A stretch of DNA of 64,000 nucleotides, taken from NCBI GenBank assembly GCA_965644295.1, contig CBFFRP010000283.1:17799-81798 (forward strand), given 5' to 3'. Numbering within the stretch: the first letter of the stretch is position 1; each line of letters opens with the position of its first letter. The translations under genes were made by a program, and so were the position numbers. The notes beneath the pieces are model-generated. The model did not search any database, was not told the DNA's origin, and worked only from the letters and a program-made list of their open reading frames with translations. Positions 4,161 through 14,822 of this stretch are shown here, piece after piece. Source of the DNA: Paraphysomonas bandaiensis (lineage: Eukaryota > Protista > Chrysophyceae).

Positions 4161-7100
4161 TATTGAATGTCTTTTTATTTAGCAATAGGCGTTAAAAACC
4201 CGTTCCGATATAGCGGCTAGTTGAATACTAGTCTACTAGTTAGACCTCTACCCATAACTAATCAGCGCAAATTCTATTATCCTACTATTTAACGCTACAG
4301 AAGCTGCTTGTGCGTCGCCGCAAGCACCAAGGTGCAACCACTTCCGTTCTTGATGTTGTGTGTGAGTTCGCCCTGCTCGTGTGTCTGAGGACTCACTGGC
4401 GCGTGTTGTCCGGGGGTCTCCCCTTGGGATACGGTTCCGCCTGACTCTGAGGTACCGGGTTCTGTATTAAGGTCCTGAGTGTACCGAGCACTAGATGTGT
4501 GGACTGAGAGGTTGATGGTGTGGTGGAATGTGGCGGTGTCGCCATGCACCGTTTGGGCGTTGGGCATAGGTGGAGTTGCCGGAGACGTCGTCGCCTTTGT
4601 CTAGGGCCTGTTGGTTTCATACGGTCCGTTGCTATGGTCCTCTGTGTATGGTTGGTAGGGTTCAGAGGTACGGTGGGCGGTGTTCCAGTCTCGGTTCGTC
4701 TGTGGATTCCTAGTAATCTTAGCACCCTTGGGCGTTTCCGTTTCTGTCTGTGGTTTGGACTCGGCCGCGGTAGTAGCCTTGGGGGGCCTTTCCGTAGGGT
4801 CACGTATCTTCTTCCGCGATCTTGGATCATGAGCTTTGCTGCAGCGAACAGCGGTAGCAGTAATTTGATGATCGCTGATTCGATGCTGCGCAGTCCTTGG
4901 GATGTCAGTGATTCATGGATGTGATCTCCAAAAACCATTTCAAGCTGTGTCATTGTGATGGTACCCGTCCAGAATCTCTCCACCTGTGGCACGGAAGGGT
5001 TCCAGGCCCTGCTGGAGAGTCGCTGGAGTACAGTGGTGGTCCATTGGGGTAATTCCGGATTCCTCATTTCTTCTAGGAGCGCGTTTTTGTGGCTGTGAAA
5101 TGCAGACTCCCTTATCTGCGTTATGGTGTCGTTTGTGCAGTCTAGACACATATGCTTGAGTGAGTCTAGTCTAAATCCGCAGTCAGAGCATACGGCTTTA
5201 GCCATGTCGAGTCCGTGTTTGGTTTTCGCCCGGTTTCTTCCTATGCTGAAGGATTTGTCCCATGTCAGTGCTGCATTTAGTACTCTTTGGCGCAGGTGGG
5301 AGCTCACTTTGTCCTTTGATGGTCCACCATCTGCTTGCGCCAGTTTGCGCGGAAGTAGTGCTCCGCTGTCTTTCCAGTATCCAGGAGCCCGGTCGGGATT
5401 GTGACCGTAGCGTTGGTCTCGGAGAGCTGTATATGCCTCCAGCGTCCGTTGATTACGGAGGGATTGGAAATCCGTGAGCAGGGGGCTAGTGCGATACGGC
5501 CGTCGTTCCCCAGTTAGGCGCCAGTGCCATAAACCCTCGGTGAGTATTCTCTCGATGGCTTGGTCCACTTCCATGTTACAGACAGTGTAGTTTTGTCGTC
5601 CGAGTAGTCGATCTACCTCAAGCCAGTCCCCTCCTGCTACTGCGTCGGCAATGTAAATTCCTTTGTCTTCATATGTCCATTCAGACTCATCAGAGGTGCG
5701 TCGTTCGGGGTGTGATCGGACCCAGGCTACTGTCCTTGTGCAATCGTTATTTGCTGCAATGCTTTCGAGCAGTACACCTTTGGCACGATGCCCCAGTGCC
5801 CGACGTCTGGCGGAGAGTGCTTCGTGTGTGCGTATGCAGACGGCCTTACAGTCCGTATTTATCGGTATGTGTGATGGGAGTCGCGCAGACAGTATAAGCG
5901 CCATTGCTGCTCCCATGAGCTCGTATGCATACGGGCCAAGTCCAGGCACGTCGCTGAAGGGTGTCTCTAATCGCAGTATTTTTGTTGTACCGTTCTTCCA
6001 TTCATCCTCCGGGGGGAGCCAGACTGCCGCCGCTCCTCCATAATGTGCCCATCTTGTACGTGGGTTTACATGCGTAATGCGGCGCGGGGATAGGGCTGTA
6101 GGCGTGTATGAGCCGTCGGTGAAGATTGCCTGATATGTATCCGCGGTTACATCATCCAGTTCTAATGTGCGGATAATGTTGATCAGGGTGTTGGTATCTT
6201 GAGGTTCCGGACTGTCGGGTTGTTGGAGAGTAAGGCCAACCTCCGTACCCCATTCCCGCAGAATTAAGGCAAAGTGGTGGTAGTTTGGGTACGGCGCGAT
6301 AGTCTGTGTTAGGAGAAAGTGCGCTGCGTCACCGGCATCACCGCCTAGGATTATGGCGCGCTGTAGGGAGCCCCATTTTTGTTCTTGAGCGGAGTCTGAG
6401 AAGCGTTTCATTCCAAGTCCATTATGCCTGAGAGAGAGGTAGATCATTTCCGTGGGGTAACCAGGACTCAGGCTTAGTGCTTTCCTGTAAAGGTTTGCGC
6501 ACGTTGAATCGATGTTCTTGTAATATTGCAGGGGCCAAGAAGCCTTGGTGGCCTTGTAAAGTAGAGTGGGTATGATTTGGGTCTCTATAACCATGACTTT
6601 GCAACCCGCTGAGGCGTGCCTGATCCCAAGGTGTGTGCCCGCTGCCTTTAGGTAGTTTGTACACCAATTGTATGAGTCCGTGTCTGTAGGTGTTAGTGGT
6701 AGATCCGCCCCCAAATAGTGTATCGATTCATGAGTCGTTTGTATTGGTACAGGTTGGGGTCTCCAATACCAGTCATATAAGGTAATGTGTCCGGTTTGTT
6801 TGACCTGGGCTAGATTTTCCCGTAGGTGAGGGAAAAAAGTGCAGATAACCTTAGGTACCGAGAGTTCCATTCCCGAGAAGCTGCAGAACGCCGACATTCG
6901 TATCGCCGTTTCCTGGGCTTGAGTGATAGACACATCTATGGTGGTGATGTCATCCGCGAAGGAGACTTTTTTCTTTGAGTTCGGGGTCAGTAGGAGTGGT
7001 GATGGTGTAAGACAGATTGCTCTAAGATCTAGGTCTAACCATGTAAGAAGGATATCGTGTAGCGCCACCCAGGCACAAGTGGATTCGGTTCCCCCCTGTG

Positions 7101-8631
7101 TGATTCCTCTCACGGCCTCAAATCCGAGTACGAACTGTGCAAGGAAGTGTCCGTCGGTAGCTAGAAGTTCTGCCAACGAGCGTGGCTCCATGTTGTTCGC
7201 CATGAACGGCGTCCATGGGAATGTGAGACCCCCAGCGTCTAATTCTCCAAACCATTCAACCACAGCATCGGGGACACCTAGCCGAGCCCATGCAAGTTTC
7301 ATTAGATTAGGTGTTATGGAGTCGAATGCTTTTTTGAAGTCCCAGAGCGTGCAGATGTGTTGGGCATTGTGACGTCTGGCTGCCTCTGAGGCCGCTAGAA
7401 CCCTTAAAATGGCCGTGTCTGTGCCATTTCTCCAGCGATATCCATGTTGGGACGGGTGTAGGATCTGCTGTTCCTCCCACAGACTGTGAGTATCCTGTGG
7501 GAGATTATTCTTGTCAGAATTTTCCGTGATATTTCGAGCAGACCGATCGGTCGAAGGTTGGAAAAAGAGGGTTCTCCTGGTTTCTTGAGTATGGGGGTCA
7601 TTACTCTGTCTCTCCACCAAGTAGGCACGTGTTTGTGCTTCCAGAGCGACTTGATAAGGGTGAATGCTTCCTGTTGTATGGCTGGAGGCCAGGATTTGAC
7701 CATGTTGGATGAGACCATGGAGGGTCCGGGAGCCCGGTTGAAGGATATGGAATGTAGGGTGGAGTAGAATTCTTCGTGCGTGATGTCCTTCTCTAAAGCC
7801 TTTCCGAGTAGGTCCGCCATTTCTGGTTTAACTTTAGTGCATAGTGCACGTCGTAGTCCGTGTTGTAGGGTAAAGGGTATGTGCGAGCACGGATGGAGGG
7901 GCTCCTGGGAAGTCACCGATTGAGGGTCAAGGAGGGTTTTCCACCAGTTGGGGTCGTCCTGTAGTCTTTGTGCGACTGGGTCCAGTCCTGCAGGTTCCGC
8001 GTGGTGGTCTCGAAAGTGTTTGTTGATTCCTTCGTGGATGTCTTGCGGGGTAGTGAGAAGTGTCCCGTCAGTAGTTCTCACTGTCGTTAGTCGAAGTGGC
8101 GTTTTGATTTTGAGTCCTATCTTCTGCAGTACTGCTTGTAGTCTTCTCTGTTCTAGTAATGCTTCCATTTGGTTTGTACGGTCTGTGAGCCTCTTGCGCA
8201 TCTCCGTCCTGTCTCGTCCGTGCAAGAGTCCTCGCATTCGAATCACAATGTGTAGAAGGTTCTTCTTGGTGACTTGTTTGGCAGTCCAGCTCAGAATGGC
8301 TCTGGGGTCTGCTGATCGGTAATCATTCCTGAAGTTGATGTCGGCTATTCCTTTCGCAGGTCCCGTGGAGTTTTGGAGGTACGAGTTCCCGCGCTCCTGC
8401 CAGGCGGTGATGAGCGCGTGGATCGGATTGCGTAATGGGGATCCACGCCATCCGTGTCTTTTATATCCAGCTGAGTTAAACATTTTCTGAACTATCTTTA
8501 TTACCATGACCATCCCTTCTTGAATTACCCTCATTTCCGGGGAGAAACCATCTTTAAAATGTGAACGAAGTCGCTGACACCGGTCATGGAGCCTCGTGCG
8601 ACGGCTGTAGCGGGGACCCTTTGCTGTAAGC
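4161..8631 (-). mobile_element. 5'-truncated non-LTR retrotransposon (RT + RNase H + CCHC finger) with 13-bp target-site duplication
   Basis: GACTTGAATTATT occurs at both 4148-4160 and 8632-8644. The interior is GC-richer than the flanks and encodes RT and RNase H motifs. Confidence 0.9.
4393..8534 (-). pseudogene. LINE ORF2 (reverse transcriptase-RNase H), single frameshift near 7480, endonuclease domain missing
   Basis: RAPGPS, PILKK..NLRPIGLL, SQHGYR, WDFKKAFDSI, RGITQGG, SFADDI and YLG are RT motifs. IFTDGS, YAYELMG, NTDCKAV, WVRSH and ADAVA are RNase H motifs. CSDCGFRLDSLKHMCLDC is the CCHC finger. ORFs 7404-8534 and 4393-7620 join as HRILTV/WEEQQILHPSQHG after removing a 2-nt insertion. 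Confidence 0.88.
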
Positions 8632-9096: not shown

Positions 9097-12000
9097 CTAA
9101 TCGATGGATCGAGTGCTTTTACTCATACCACTACTAGTCTTTGCATTCTGCGGGACAGGTAAATTAATTTCTCCAAGAAATCCAATTCCTGATGCAGAAG
9201 TCGCACCCTTGTTTGAGTTAGCAGAGAATGAATTCAACACTCCTGTTGCTTGTTCTATGGCGCGCTGACTGACTGGTACTGATGATCCCCGCCCGGTGCT
9301 AAATACATGACCGACCTGCAGTCTTTCTGGAGGACAAGCTCTGGGAGGTGACGGCGATGCGTCAGCTTTACGACTGATAGCATGTCCAACGGCTTCCATA
9401 CCATTGGAATTCTTTGATATCGAAGTAGCTGTAACAGGGCCTGACACAGAGGAACCAATCCCTGTGACCGTCTGTTTGGCTAAAGCCCTTGCTCGCTGTT
9501 TCTCTAGCGCGCGGCGCCTATTCTCCTCTATACGAGCCATGGTAGCTGGAGATAGAGGCCTATCGACGGCATTACTAGGAACACTTGAACAAGGAGGAGG
9601 CACTGAAGAAATATAAGTGAATCCCTGCGAACCCGTGGCATCTATCCTACTCGAATTAGATCCCATATTGACATGAGTATTACCCCCACTGTTCACGGAA
9701 TTCGTAATGGAAGCATTGCGTACTCCAGGTTCACCGTGGTCACCGGTCGAGGTGCCCACTGCGCTATTGCTAAAGGAGCCAGTCAAACTGTTACTAAACA
9801 TACTTCGGCTACAACCAGCATCGCCACTATTTTGAGCTGTAGGAATAAACCCATTGCTACTAGCAGCATTCGTCATGGTCTCAATACCATTCTTAGCACT
9901 ACCAGTGGCAGTATTTGTCCCAGTAATATTACGTGCATCTGCATACGTACTACTATCACAACCGGATCCATTATGGATGATATTGACAGATCTAGAGGAA
10001 GCCGAAGGCGGAGCAGGTCCATACACAGCAAAAGGGTTCGCACAAGGAGCGGTAGTTCGCGATACCACAGATGCCGTCTGCTTCTTCTTTTCCACCTCGG
10101 TATTTTTACATGGAGATGTCGAACTCATAAAACTGTCAATGGTCTTTTGTACACAACTATTTCCACTGCTATTGCTATCCTTTACGCCCGTCCGCGTCCC
10201 TGCTACAGACGTTCCATCTCCATCGATACCTGTTGTAGGTCGTCACGTAATCCCTATGTGACACAAAAAACATACCTACTGTAGCTGCTAGCGTCTTGTT
10301 TTTCCGCTGAATTTGCTCCCATCTAAATCATACAAAAGCCATTACCATAATAGGAGATATATGTCAACACAGAGGAACACTCACACGATATCATCCGAAG
10401 TACCTTCGGCTAGAATGTACACTATACGGACACTATCGGATTTCTGACCCAACCTGGATAGAAACCACGTCATCAAACGCACACTTTATACAGCATAAAC
10501 GCAATCACCTATGTATTCTATCCTCTGCTTGCAGCATGTGTCCAGCTCCCCAGTGAAGCTCGGCAAAAACAGCTACGTTGGCGCTGGTGAAGTTGAGACC
10601 CATACCGCATGCCGTAATGCTGAGAAGTGCCACCTCGGTCTACAAAATAACTTGAGCCAAATTGGCAATGCTAACGATCATAATGGACATTGTACACATA
10701 TAGGATACTGTAGTCGTACCTCTCTGTCCGTCTGAAACCGCGATATTAACGCCCCTCTTGCAGTAACCTGAACTGACCCATCTATTCGGATGTAGCGGAC
10801 ATCCATAGCACGCAGGCCCGCCTCTATTGCGTCCATTACTTCAGAATGGTGAGCGAAAACCAGGACTTTACCCCCAATGCTACATGCAGATGGTGTGGTC
10901 GCTGGTGATACAGTGCTGCATGTATCTCTTCGCCCTTTCTTTCTAGGTCCTACACTACTGTTGGAGTAATCCAGCACTTCCCGCCAACTCTTTATAGACT
11001 TTACGTTCTCTTTCCTCTTTGATGTAGTTTGAAAACACTTCCGCCTCCGAGATCGCTGCATAAAAAATATGTCTCCATCATCATCATCGCCTTGCAGTCG
11101 ATGTTTTGATGCCTCATCTTCTTCGTCAGTGTCCTGCAGGCCTTCGTCATCAGCAGAAGGTAAAACTGACGGGGTGCCACGGGGTTCAGTGAGAATATCC
11201 TCCTCCAGCTCAGATACCACGCCCTCCGTTTTGTCTTGCTGATGTATAGACATCTCCTCTTCGTTGCTATTGTCCCATATACCCAGACTATCTCTATTTG
11301 TCAGGTCTATACTAGTGTCGGCCTCCACAGTATTTTCGATTACTTGCTGCAACTGTTCATTCTCCTGTGACCGACGCGCATCCCTTGCCTCCTGCAACAA
11401 GTTTCGCAATTCCCCCATAACTTTCTTGATCTTGCTCATACCCGTGACTCCGCAGAGCTGATTCATCAGTGTTCTACTCTGAGTACGAAGTATTTCAGCG
11501 GTTTCAGCACTATTCGTCGGGTCTTCTGCTGCGGCCTCCGCAACCCTCATCCGTTCCCGCAACTGTTGCAGCTCCCCGACCTTTTCTGCGTCAGGTTTCA
11601 CCCGACGAACTTCGCGCTTCTTGGGAGGTAAACCACGAATTACCTCAGACTTGAGTCGCCGAATCATCACCATGCCTTCTAATACATTTCTGAGCTCCGA
11701 TTCGTTACTCGATCCAGACACGTCCATCTTTGTCCCAAACCTGGGCTTCTTGGGATCGCAGTATCTCGAGGTGAACGCATCATAGTCATTAAATACGCCA
11801 GGTAATAGGCCATTGAGTTGGGTGTACAGTTCAACTGGACGATTTACTGCCGGTGTGCCCGATAGACATATCGCCACCTTGGCTTGCTTTAAAAGTGGCA
11901 AGGCTAGAGTAGTCCGCTTGGCTTCCTTAGACTTCAGTTGATGAGACTCGTCCGCTATCACAATACCGAATCTGCAGGCACTAAAAGTGCCTTCAGAGAC

Positions 12001-12947
12001 AAGACGCTCCAGAAGTGTGTACGAGGCAACACACACTTTCCCGAACACCCGATCTCCAGCTTTACGTACTACACATACATCTTTAGGCAATAGCCAGCCC
12101 GCACTGTATGCAGCTATCTCGGACTCCCAGTGCTTCAGAATAGATGGAGGGGTCAGAACTAGTGCTGGTAAATGAGCTCTATACTGCTGCATCACCGCTA
12201 ATGCCTCAAGTGTCTTTCCACAACCCTATGCACAACATTCGATTATAATACCATGGAAACCGCAAGCACTCACCATTTCATCTCCAATCATCGCCCTACC
12301 CCCTCGTCGGATGACGAATTCCAGACACTCCATTTGAAAAGATAAAAGGGTGTCAGCAATGCTACCAAGAAGATCTACGTCTGGTACCGTCGTAGGAAGC
12401 GATGCAACAAACTTTTTAATTCCGCGTACCAAGAATTTAGGTAATTCTGACACAACAATTCGAGAAGAAAATTGGCTGGAAAGAAGCGTCGATACAATTT
12501 GGTCATACATTGCAAAATCAAAGCTCCACATCCTTAAAGATTCGGTGTATTTCCTGTGCTCTTGTGGTATGGTTTGAAAGAAAGCTACTAACTCTGGATC
12601 AACAGGACATTGGACATTGAACCATACTCTAAACGGAGGACCTGAAATACCTCAAGTCAATAGAAATTCCACAAAACAAACAGAAATATATAACCTTCTT
12701 CAAACTCGCCACATATCATCTTAGCTGTTATCTTCCCCACCCCGGCTGTTCCCTGAGGACCTGAACTCGACTTGATGCGCTGATATCTGGAAGTCGGTAC
12801 GCCGCCGCGTATGGAGTCTTCCACCCAGCAAAAGAACCCACACATGGAAGCTGCACAGGAGTAAAATTGACGACCAAAATTTGGGCTATTCGATTTGGCC
12901 ACAGTGCGGATAACCACTGGTTCAGGAGGGCTGCAAGAACAGTTCAT
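9097..12947 (-). CDS. SMARCAL1: SMARCAL1/HARP-like SNF2 annealing helicase with N-terminal GRF zinc finger (multi-exon)
   Basis: GRF finger ([18 protein letters not shown]); HARP-like segment ([29 protein letters not shown]); spliced GDEMGCGKT; IADESH; [17 protein letters not shown]; MIRRLKSEV; KVLVFAHH; YIRIDGS. Confidence 0.8.
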
Positions 12948-13409: not shown

Positions 13410-14822
13410 ATGATCATCTTGCAGCTGAACGTATGCGTTCCCATACTATTAACACTCTCACTAGCAGCTGCATTGAGGCCTAACATTATTATTATCCTAG
13501 TCGATGATGCTGGATATGATGATATCAATGGAACTCATAGCCCCACCCCTCATATTAATTCGATAGGAAATAATGGCGTTATTTTTTCTAATGCTTATGT
13601 CACTGCCCCACAATGCAGTCCGTCGCGACTGGCGCTTCTCACTGGTCGTTATCAACAGCACTTTGGCCATGAAACTAACCTTGAGTTTCTTGTTGGAATG
13701 TCAAATGAAAGCACCAAGATTATTCCGCAGTTTTTGCCCCATGACTACGCAACCGCCATGATAGGGAAATGGAATCTAGGCGATATACCTAATGCGCCGG
13801 GGAAGCATGGTTTCAATGAAACATTTCTTTATCGACATTGCGATGAAGCTTTTGCTCGGAATGAATCATTAATGATTGGCGATATTCCTGTTCGTGGACG
13901 GGAATTCAGTACTAGCCTAATGTTTTCCCGCGCTGAGCAGTTCATAGAACGACAGGTTTCTCGCACTGTACCATTCTTCTTGTATTTAGCTCCAATGTCT
14001 CCACACGTGCCCCATGTGTACCCACCCTGGTATGCCTCTGTGTTCGAGGCACAGGATCCGTCTCTTCCTCTTCCCCGTCGGCGGGTTCTTACAATGATGA
14101 GAGAGATAGACGATGGGATTGGGAGAATCTTAAAGAGTTTGAAGGACCAAGGGGTTTTCCATGACACGATGATTGTATTTGTTAATGATAACGGTGCCCC
14201 GCACTTAGGAGGTGGGTCAACTACTACTTCCCCTAATCGACCGTTCAGGGGTTTCAAAGGCGATACCTTGGAAGGTGGGGTGCGTGTCCGGATGCACGTA
14301 CAGTGGACCAAGGAAATATTAAAAGGCCAAGTTGTAAACGACCCGGTGAGCTCACTTGATATACTTCCTACTATTGTAGATATTACCCGTTCAAAGCAAT
14401 CTGCTCTCAGTGTGCGTGATGGTAAGAGCTGGATAGAATACATCCGTGCTTTCCAGAGGGTTCCCGTGAAGTCACACTGGGACCGAACACTCTTTTGGAG
14501 GTTCCACATGGAGTGTCGGGAGGAAAAGCGGGCAGTGAGAGAGGGCGATTGGAAATGGGTCTGGTATGACCAACAGCAAAGTGACCAGCAACTGTATAAT
14601 ATTACTGCGGACGTAAGTGAGTCCCGAAATTTGGCTGCTATGTACCCGGATATTGTCGCAGAAATGAGAACGAAGTACGAGAGGTGGCAAGCTCAGTTTC
14701 CTCCTATTCCACGGAAGCCCAAGTCACAAATAGAGTGTCAGCAGCAGCACAAACATCATATTCACCATGTAACCGTTGCCACACATAACAGGTTTCACAC
14801 TACAATGCAGAAGGGTAGTTAG
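13410..14822 (+). CDS. Secreted arylsulfatase-family sulfatase (intronless)
   Basis: Signal peptide, RPNIIIILVDDAGY, catalytic CSPSR (CxPxR) with LLTGRY, GKWNLG, NDNG, GFKGDTLEGGVRV and LYNITADVSESRNLA. Confidence 0.92.
   Translation: MIILQLNVCVPILLTLSLAAALRPNIIIILVDDAGYDDINGTHSPTPHINSIGNNGVIFSNAYVTAPQCSPSRLALLTGRYQQHFGHETNLEFLVGMSNESTKIIPQFLPHDYATAMIGKWNLGDIPNAPGKHGFNETFLYRHCDEAFARNESLMIGDIPVRGREFSTSLMFSRAEQFIERQVSRTVPFFLYLAPMSPHVPHVYPPWYASVFEAQDPSLPLPRRRVLTMMREIDDGIGRILKSLKDQGVFHDTMIVFVNDNGAPHLGGGSTTTSPNRPFRGFKGDTLEGGVRVRMHVQWTKEILKGQVVNDPVSSLDILPTIVDITRSKQSALSVRDGKSWIEYIRAFQRVPVKSHWDRTLFWRFHMECREEKRAVREGDWKWVWYDQQQSDQQLYNITADVSESRNLAAMYPDIVAEMRTKYERWQAQFPPIPRKPKSQIECQQQHKHHIHHVTVATHNRFHTTMQKGS

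Follow-up and report, generated by a model that had tools for sequence, protein, structure and literature searches.

Gene model and folded domains

The 64,000-nucleotide stretch of the Paraphysomonas bandaiensis genome analysed here (the window; contig CBFFRP010000283.1, positions 17,799 to 81,798 of the forward strand) is eukaryotic in character, with short GT-AG introns, and carries on its minus strand a gene of seven GT-AG exons (12947-9097), the predicted product of which combines a GRF zinc finger, a SMARCAL1-type motor and a long disordered C-terminal tail. A first-pass annotation, made from the letters alone, had picked out two peptides in this tail, likening one (9555-9487) to the RPA32-binding motif of SMARCAL1, XPA and TIPIN and the other (9303-9232) to the BRC repeats by which BRCA2 binds RAD51, and had proposed a fork-remodelling enzyme that could couple RPA and RAD51. 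The reading frame of the gene extends from an ATG at 12947 to a stop codon at 9097-9099 and comprises 3507 nucleotides, that is 1168 codons and the stop, with splice phases that are consistent throughout. The exons are as follows.

12695-12947, minus strand: exon 1, carrying the start codon and, at about 12941-12816, the GRF zinc finger; before the GT donor at 12694 a single base of a Gly codon remains
12274-12641, minus strand: exon 2, with a candidate single HARP domain (about 12621-12487), after which the SNF2 ATPase begins (FQME and the initial half of the Walker A region)
10720-12225, minus strand: exon 3, with the SNF2 N-lobe (Pfam SNF2-rel_dom, E 6e-24), an extended acidic insert and the first part of the C-lobe
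10509-10639, minus strand: exon 4, with the helicase C-lobe as far as motif VI (Pfam Helicase_C, E 3.7e-6), the splice phase being taken from the sequence
10385-10453, minus strand: exon 5, the remainder of motif VI and the part downstream, where the spliced reading agrees with orthologue sequence after motif VI
10276-10322, minus strand: exon 6, a short linker exon whose final base opens a Gly codon
9097-10229, minus strand: exon 7, a low-complexity, disordered tail of 376 residues, in which Pfam gave no domain above cut-off, and the stop codon

Both peptides lie where the first-pass annotation had put them, on the minus strand in a single open reading frame (9097-10128) that falls within exon 7. 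Whether this exon is truly joined to the helicase was judged exon by exon, with the help of relatives. A search with the ATPase exon retrieved a clade of metagenomic and EukProt proteins of 38-49% identity, many of them with both GRF and SNF2 matches, and a second search from one such relative, P0011, led to full-length proteins of 1000-1360 residues; the closest relatives to bear a name come from chrysophytes, namely Ochromonadaceae sp. CCMP2298, a chrysophyte assembly and Ochromonas danica. One of the orthologues, P0125, is encoded by a single uninterrupted open reading frame of 3681 nucleotides and 1226 residues (L022:2001-5681), which contains the GRF, SNF2 and Helicase_C matches together with the tail motifs. 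In the window itself the join of exons 6 and 7 restores the split Gly codon and the sequence TVGI.D, which is continuous in the orthologues P0121, P0123 and P0124. Similarly, in five further contigs (L010-L014) the helicase frame is followed, at a distance of no more than a few hundred bases, by a tail frame of the same strand.

It might be argued that the tail is instead a separate gene or an untranslated region whose adjacency to the helicase is incidental. In favour of this, the tail frame possesses an ATG of its own at 10128, and a word search with the tail exon alone found no relatives. The word search is, however, without informative value, since short motifs are all that the tails have in common and the candidates are limited by length; the frame of exon 7 stays open upstream of the ATG at 10128 as far as an AG acceptor which completes the split Gly codon. 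Because the whole protein is a single frame in P0125, the junction of exons 6 and 7 is conserved and the order of helicase and tail is kept in all five contigs, a separate transcript, which the first-pass annotation had itself named as fatal to its proposal, appears very unlikely, and we regard an incidental adjacency as highly improbable. Tail and helicase would thus form one gene.

The zinc finger noticed earlier at the N-terminus lies above the Pfam threshold (PF06839, Zn_ribbon_GRF, E 1.9e-9; 37.9 bits, cut-off 25.9) and is also detected in the orthologues P0122, P0124, P0125 and P0128; in other proteins this finger is a binder of single-stranded DNA. Likewise, the closest named matches of the motor are SMARCAL1 and chromatin remodeling factor 18 (CHR18), at 33-42% identity, and the sequence thus supports the SMARCAL1-type SNF2 ATPase that had been proposed. 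The HARP domain upstream of the ATPase, a module for substrate recognition, is suggested by four concordant lines, each individually weak, a point to be set against this part of the assignment: one copy is matched by Pfam (E 1.5e-4, 21.6 bits, under the cut-off of 25); an orthologue profile matches the SMARCAL1 HARP structure 4O66 weakly (E 0.15); an AlphaFold2 model of the segment (predicted local distance difference test, pLDDT, 81.8) gave no significant match in Foldseek, 4o66_A having a probability of 0.38 and a template-modelling (TM) score of 0.63 by target; and the same structure, 4o66_A, ranks first when the model is submitted to VIA-align (Z 4.9, root-mean-square deviation 1.8 Å over 51 residues).

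Two further observations concern the motor. Between its two RecA-like lobes exon 3 encodes a highly acidic, Ser-rich insert of about 200 residues (about 11560-10900, minus strand), and in the relatives, too, the SNF2 and Helicase_C matches lie far apart. Only one other locus of the genome matches the ATPase exon (L021, G000:C123:61361-61795; 43% identity over 130 residues); it contains in-frame stops, which may be introns, and may be an SNF2 paralogue, of the ZRANB3 or another type.

Conserved motifs in the tail

When 11 whole orthologue tails were aligned with MAFFT, using no motif pattern, and the columns were scored for conservation, exactly four islands rose above the background, everything between them being unalignable. 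In the window these islands correspond to the following elements.

10126-10155, minus strand: island 1 (peak 1.42), a PCNA-interacting-protein (PIP)-like box, QKTIDSFM, with its Q at 10149
9481-9561, minus strand: island 2, a helix of the RPA32C-binding type
9232-9315, minus strand: a BRC-like repeat (island 3 spanning 9315-9265), with F at 9303, an FSTG hairpin core, VS, and VL at +21/+22
9100-9120, minus strand: island 4 (peak 1.87), the C-terminal end, with basic residues followed by RS[IV]D-COOH

Two of the four coincide with the RPA-type and BRC-like peptides, so that the conservation in orthologues on which the first-pass annotation had made its proposal depend is indeed found for both, and the other two, the PIP-like box and the C-terminal RS[IV]D, had been missed. 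Against the PIP consensus, Q-x-x-[ILM]-x-x-[FY]-[FY], the window box has Met at the last aromatic position, the canonical QKPLEHFF being present in L012 and L014. The basic-RS[IV]D element stands at the very end of all 11 aligned tails. We know of no docking motif that it matches, and neither a 14-3-3 mode III site nor a kinase site nor a nuclear import signal, the candidates tried, is a good enough fit.

A search of solved structures with the window sequence alone (both peptides and half of the tail) returned only chance matches, and profiles built from orthologues were therefore needed. These were A2, made from 16 orthologue segments of the RPA motif, and A1, made from 13 segments of the BRC-like motif, each searched against 177635 Protein Data Bank (PDB) sequences. 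The four top matches of A2 are TIPIN 192-223 (E 4.1e-7), the SMARCAL1 peptide 4MQV_B (E 9.4e-6), which was solved together with RPA32C, XPA 20-45 (E 0.0033) and yeast Rad14, and in all four the matched segment is a known RPA32C-binding helix. The same profile also matches residues 1-35 of 11 animal SMARCAL1 proteins and therefore, judged by profile, the window motif is the same element as the N-terminal motif of animal SMARCAL1, placed at the opposite end of the protein. The earlier assignment of this peptide to the RPA32-binding class, including its displacement from the N-terminus in animals to the vicinity of the C-terminus here, is thus borne out. In animals, it is through this helix that SMARCAL1 is brought to RPA-coated DNA where forks have stalled.

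For the BRC-like motif, the three best PDB matches of A1 are all BRC peptides of BRCA2 (8C3N_B, E 2.8e-5; 6HQU_I, E 0.31; 7QV8_D, E 1.3). A comparison within the genome leads in the same direction. On scanning the repeat core of the organism's own BRCA2 across the 376-residue tail, ungapped and with BLOSUM62, the best match is exactly the BRC-like motif, with a score of 58 and 12 identities in 26 positions, a score reached by none of 20000 composition-preserving shuffles (mean 20, standard deviation 4.4, maximum 51). The FxxA form of the core is found in L012, L014, P0122, P0125-7, P0128 and P0133, and the second hydrophobic module, which stands at the LFDE position some 21-22 residues beyond the Phe and is VL at +21/+22 in the window, is LF in L012 and FF in P0122 at the same spacing and LF at +22/+23 in P0133, such that L012, P0122 and P0133 combine FxxA with the hydrophobic pair as in BRC4. 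At the level of the family, then, the BRC-like character claimed for the second peptide holds, and the comparisons confirm that its resemblance in sequence to a BRC repeat exceeds chance. The A1 profile found no match in the animal and plant SMARCAL1 proteins that were retrieved, and among the sequences seen the repeat is therefore specific to this clade.

Partner genes and related systems

The genome encodes RAD51 (C559), a DMC1-like gene (C269) and an RPA32 C-terminal domain (C17). The polymerisation motif of RAD51 is FQSA and is split by an intron. In the DMC1-like gene (L018:1253-1480; G000:C269, about 10431-10658), the best PDB matches of which are DMC1 (E 1.4e-17), the corresponding motif is FRTG, an FxxG form where human DMC1 has FLTA; Gly at the fourth position therefore has a native use here in a motif of this type. 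In the BRCA2 homologue, a 1722-residue open frame on C312 includes about 20 BRC units in tandem, nearly identical and each of 198 nucleotides or 66 residues (G000:C312:23322-27161; L001-L009), an array reminiscent of the BRC expansion in Trypanosoma brucei (PMC3553974).

The system that the window gene most invites comparison with is animal SMARCAL1. Both have an SNF2 ATPase belonging to one subfamily, preceded by a HARP domain (in the window gene a candidate), and RPA32C-binding helices of one sequence class that a single profile matches. Both may also contact RAD51: human SMARCAL1 binds RAD51, and is stimulated by it, via an FxxA motif at F446 which is required for its cellular effect and is the only mapped contact between such a motor and RAD51 in human cells (PMC9371921), whereas in the window protein the contact is only predicted, from the BRC-like motif. 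The differences are that the RPA motif is N-terminal in animals but near the C-terminus here, that animals have two HARP domains where one is suggested for the window gene, that the GRF finger, PIP-like box and BRC-type repeat of the window protein are all absent from animal SMARCAL1, and that the FxxA at F446 in human is FQME, encoded by exon 2, in the window gene. The notion that an internal FxxA had been lost and replaced by the tail repeat was considered and rejected, nearly all relatives, including those of animals and plants, having FQxE/D at this position and only 3 of 150 having Ala; since FQxE/D is general in the clade and in almost all relatives, the position says nothing either way.

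ZRANB3 (AH2) is likewise an SNF2 fork remodeller that docks on PCNA via short motifs (a PIP box and an APIM) and, like SMARCAL1, contacts RAD51 directly in human (PMC9371921), but it carries its HARP-like domain after the ATPase, together with an NZF finger and an HNH nuclease, none of which is present in the window gene, and it is without an RPA32C motif. With the BRC motifs of BRCA2, RECQL5 and MCM9 the window motif shares the FxTA/G-G-x-x-hydrophobic-x-hydrophobic-S core and a hydrophobic pair about 21 residues further on, and with RECQL5 and MCM9, helicases to which BRC-variant motifs recruit RAD51, a position in a disordered region of a DNA motor (PMC7949153). It differs in being a single copy and in its host, an SNF2 motor where the others are BRCA2, a RecQ helicase and an MCM protein, in the Gly that replaces Ala in its subclade, in its Pfam score below the cut-off and, compared to the RECQL5 and MCM9 variants, in having no inserted linker between the two modules. 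Finally, the RPA32C-binding motifs of TIPIN, the best PDB match, and of XPA and UNG2 are helices of the same class in different host proteins, the docking helix alone being held in common.

A literature search found no paper that pairs SMARCAL1 with a GRF zinc finger and none describing a fork-remodelling motor whose tail combines an RPA-binding helix with a BRC repeat, while papers that mention both SMARCAL1 and BRC repeats treat the latter, as far as their titles and abstracts show, as belonging to BRCA2. The suggestion of the first-pass annotation that an enzyme coupling RPA and RAD51 has an undescribed architecture is therefore to be divided. What is new is that a GRF finger is combined with a tail bearing a BRC-type repeat; the coupling itself is a known principle, because human SMARCAL1 already binds both RPA and RAD51 (PMC9371921).

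Possible function of the tail and neighbouring genes

The explanation that we favour, with somewhat better than even confidence, is that the locus is a single gene, which in a stramenopile clade specifies an annealing helicase and fork remodeller of the SMARCAL1 type with a tail that docks RPA, PCNA and a recombinase of the RAD51 family. We infer this function from the gene model, the domains, the conservation and profile identity of the motifs and the presence of the partner genes. The tail would then be a string of short docking motifs appended to a folded GRF-HARP-SNF2 part, the PIP-like box being a putative dock for PCNA and the amphipathic basic helix a putative dock for the C-terminal winged helix of RPA32, whereas the Phe of the BRC-type repeat is predicted to enter the oligomerisation pocket of a RAD51-family recombinase, either RAD51 or the DMC1-like paralogue. 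The contacts with RPA and PCNA could bring the motor to a stalled fork, where the BRC repeat would hold a recombinase monomer beside it, and this recombinase could then either stimulate fork reversal or pass onto the regressed arm for protection. A stronger version, which we put forward tentatively and would expect to be wrong rather than right, is that of a fork remodeller with a BRCA2-type handle for loading RAD51, such that one polypeptide would recognise RPA-coated DNA and PCNA at a stalled fork, carry out the reversal and, without BRCA2, deliver RAD51 (or DMC1) to the regressed arm or retain it there.

Several results weigh against the BRC component of this explanation. In the Pfam check suggested by the first-pass annotation the BRCA2-repeat model, PF00634, is the only family matched by the window copy (E 0.03-0.046), but the match is sub-threshold, at 13.6-14.2 bits against 20.3; with the same model a match is obtained in only 2 of 13 orthologue segments at E<=10 (best E 0.0098) and in none of 7 full-length orthologues, nor in the whole tails, at E<=0.1. 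The window reads FSTG and not FxxA, the Gly being kept in L010, L011, P0124 and P0139, and in P0124-P0128 conservation does not extend to the second half of the repeat, the second hydrophobic module being absent. Furthermore, the A1 segments were located by a loose F-x-[TS]-[AG]-x-G pattern, which biases the first six columns of the profile towards BRC, although the 11-tail alignment, being free of patterns, is independent of this. The sub-threshold match and the poorly conserved second half, together with the shortness of the motif, its Ser/Thr/Gly-rich composition within a low-complexity tail and the fact that in P0128 the C-terminal RSLD follows directly after the FxxA core, so that the motif runs straight into it, could be taken to mean that the BRC likeness is convergent or fortuitous, the island being kept for another reason, for instance as a phosphorylation cluster, as a motif for beta-strand addition with another partner or as part of a bipartite signal with RS[IV]D. 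We consider this unlikely: it would leave to coincidence that BRC peptides alone occupy the first three places among the structures found by A1, that no shuffle equals the match to the organism's own BRCA2 repeat, that the canonical FxxA and LF spacing recurs in L012, P0122 and P0133, and that the motif has an RPA32C motif as its neighbour on a fork remodeller, a setting in which contact with RAD51 has a precedent (PMC9371921).

Another view would accept the island as a real docking motif but assign to it a different partner, the DMC1-like recombinase or a RAD51 paralogue, or a different sense, that of an anti-recombinase handle which strips or caps RAD51, as has been proposed for the BRC variant of RECQL5. 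In this context it is relevant that the FxTG of the window subclade matches the FRTG of the DMC1-like protein and not the FQSA of RAD51, and that BRC-variant motifs in other helicases restrain RAD51 (PMC7949153 and the abstract of PMC12526125). Yet RAD51 and DMC1 share the recombinase pocket, FxxA is the form in the more distant orthologues, and in human cells RAD51 stimulates SMARCAL1 (PMC9371921), and on balance we hold this alternative to be rather improbable. As to the partner itself, it could be either RAD51 or the DMC1-like protein, between which the present sequence data do not discriminate.

Why fork reversal needs RAD51, and how RAD51 communicates with SMARCAL1 and ZRANB3, are questions under active study. 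A clade-wide BRC repeat beside an RPA32C helix and a PIP-like box would provide independent evolutionary evidence that the contact between motor and recombinase is selected, and the loading handle, if true, would be a natural fusion arguing that the need for RAD51 in fork reversal rests on a direct and ancient contact of this kind. The gene would also offer a compact natural test system, with four peptides on one tail and the partner genes in the same genome. More generally, the RPA32C motif can shift from the N- to the C-terminus within one enzyme family, and BRC-type repeats would extend beyond BRCA2, RecQ helicases and MCM proteins to SNF2 motors.

On either side of the helicase gene the window contains further open reading frames. 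Immediately downstream of it, two long frames of 1075 and 376 residues (4393-8534, minus strand) occupy a GC-richer block (about 51% compared with about 45%); with a FADD motif of the reverse-transcriptase type in their translation they look like a non-LTR (long terminal repeat) retrotransposon. Divergent from the helicase gene on its other side is a frame of 470 residues (13410-14822, plus strand), in which a C-x-P-S-R sulfatase signature (CSPSR) near the N-terminus points to what is probably an arylsulfatase-type enzyme.

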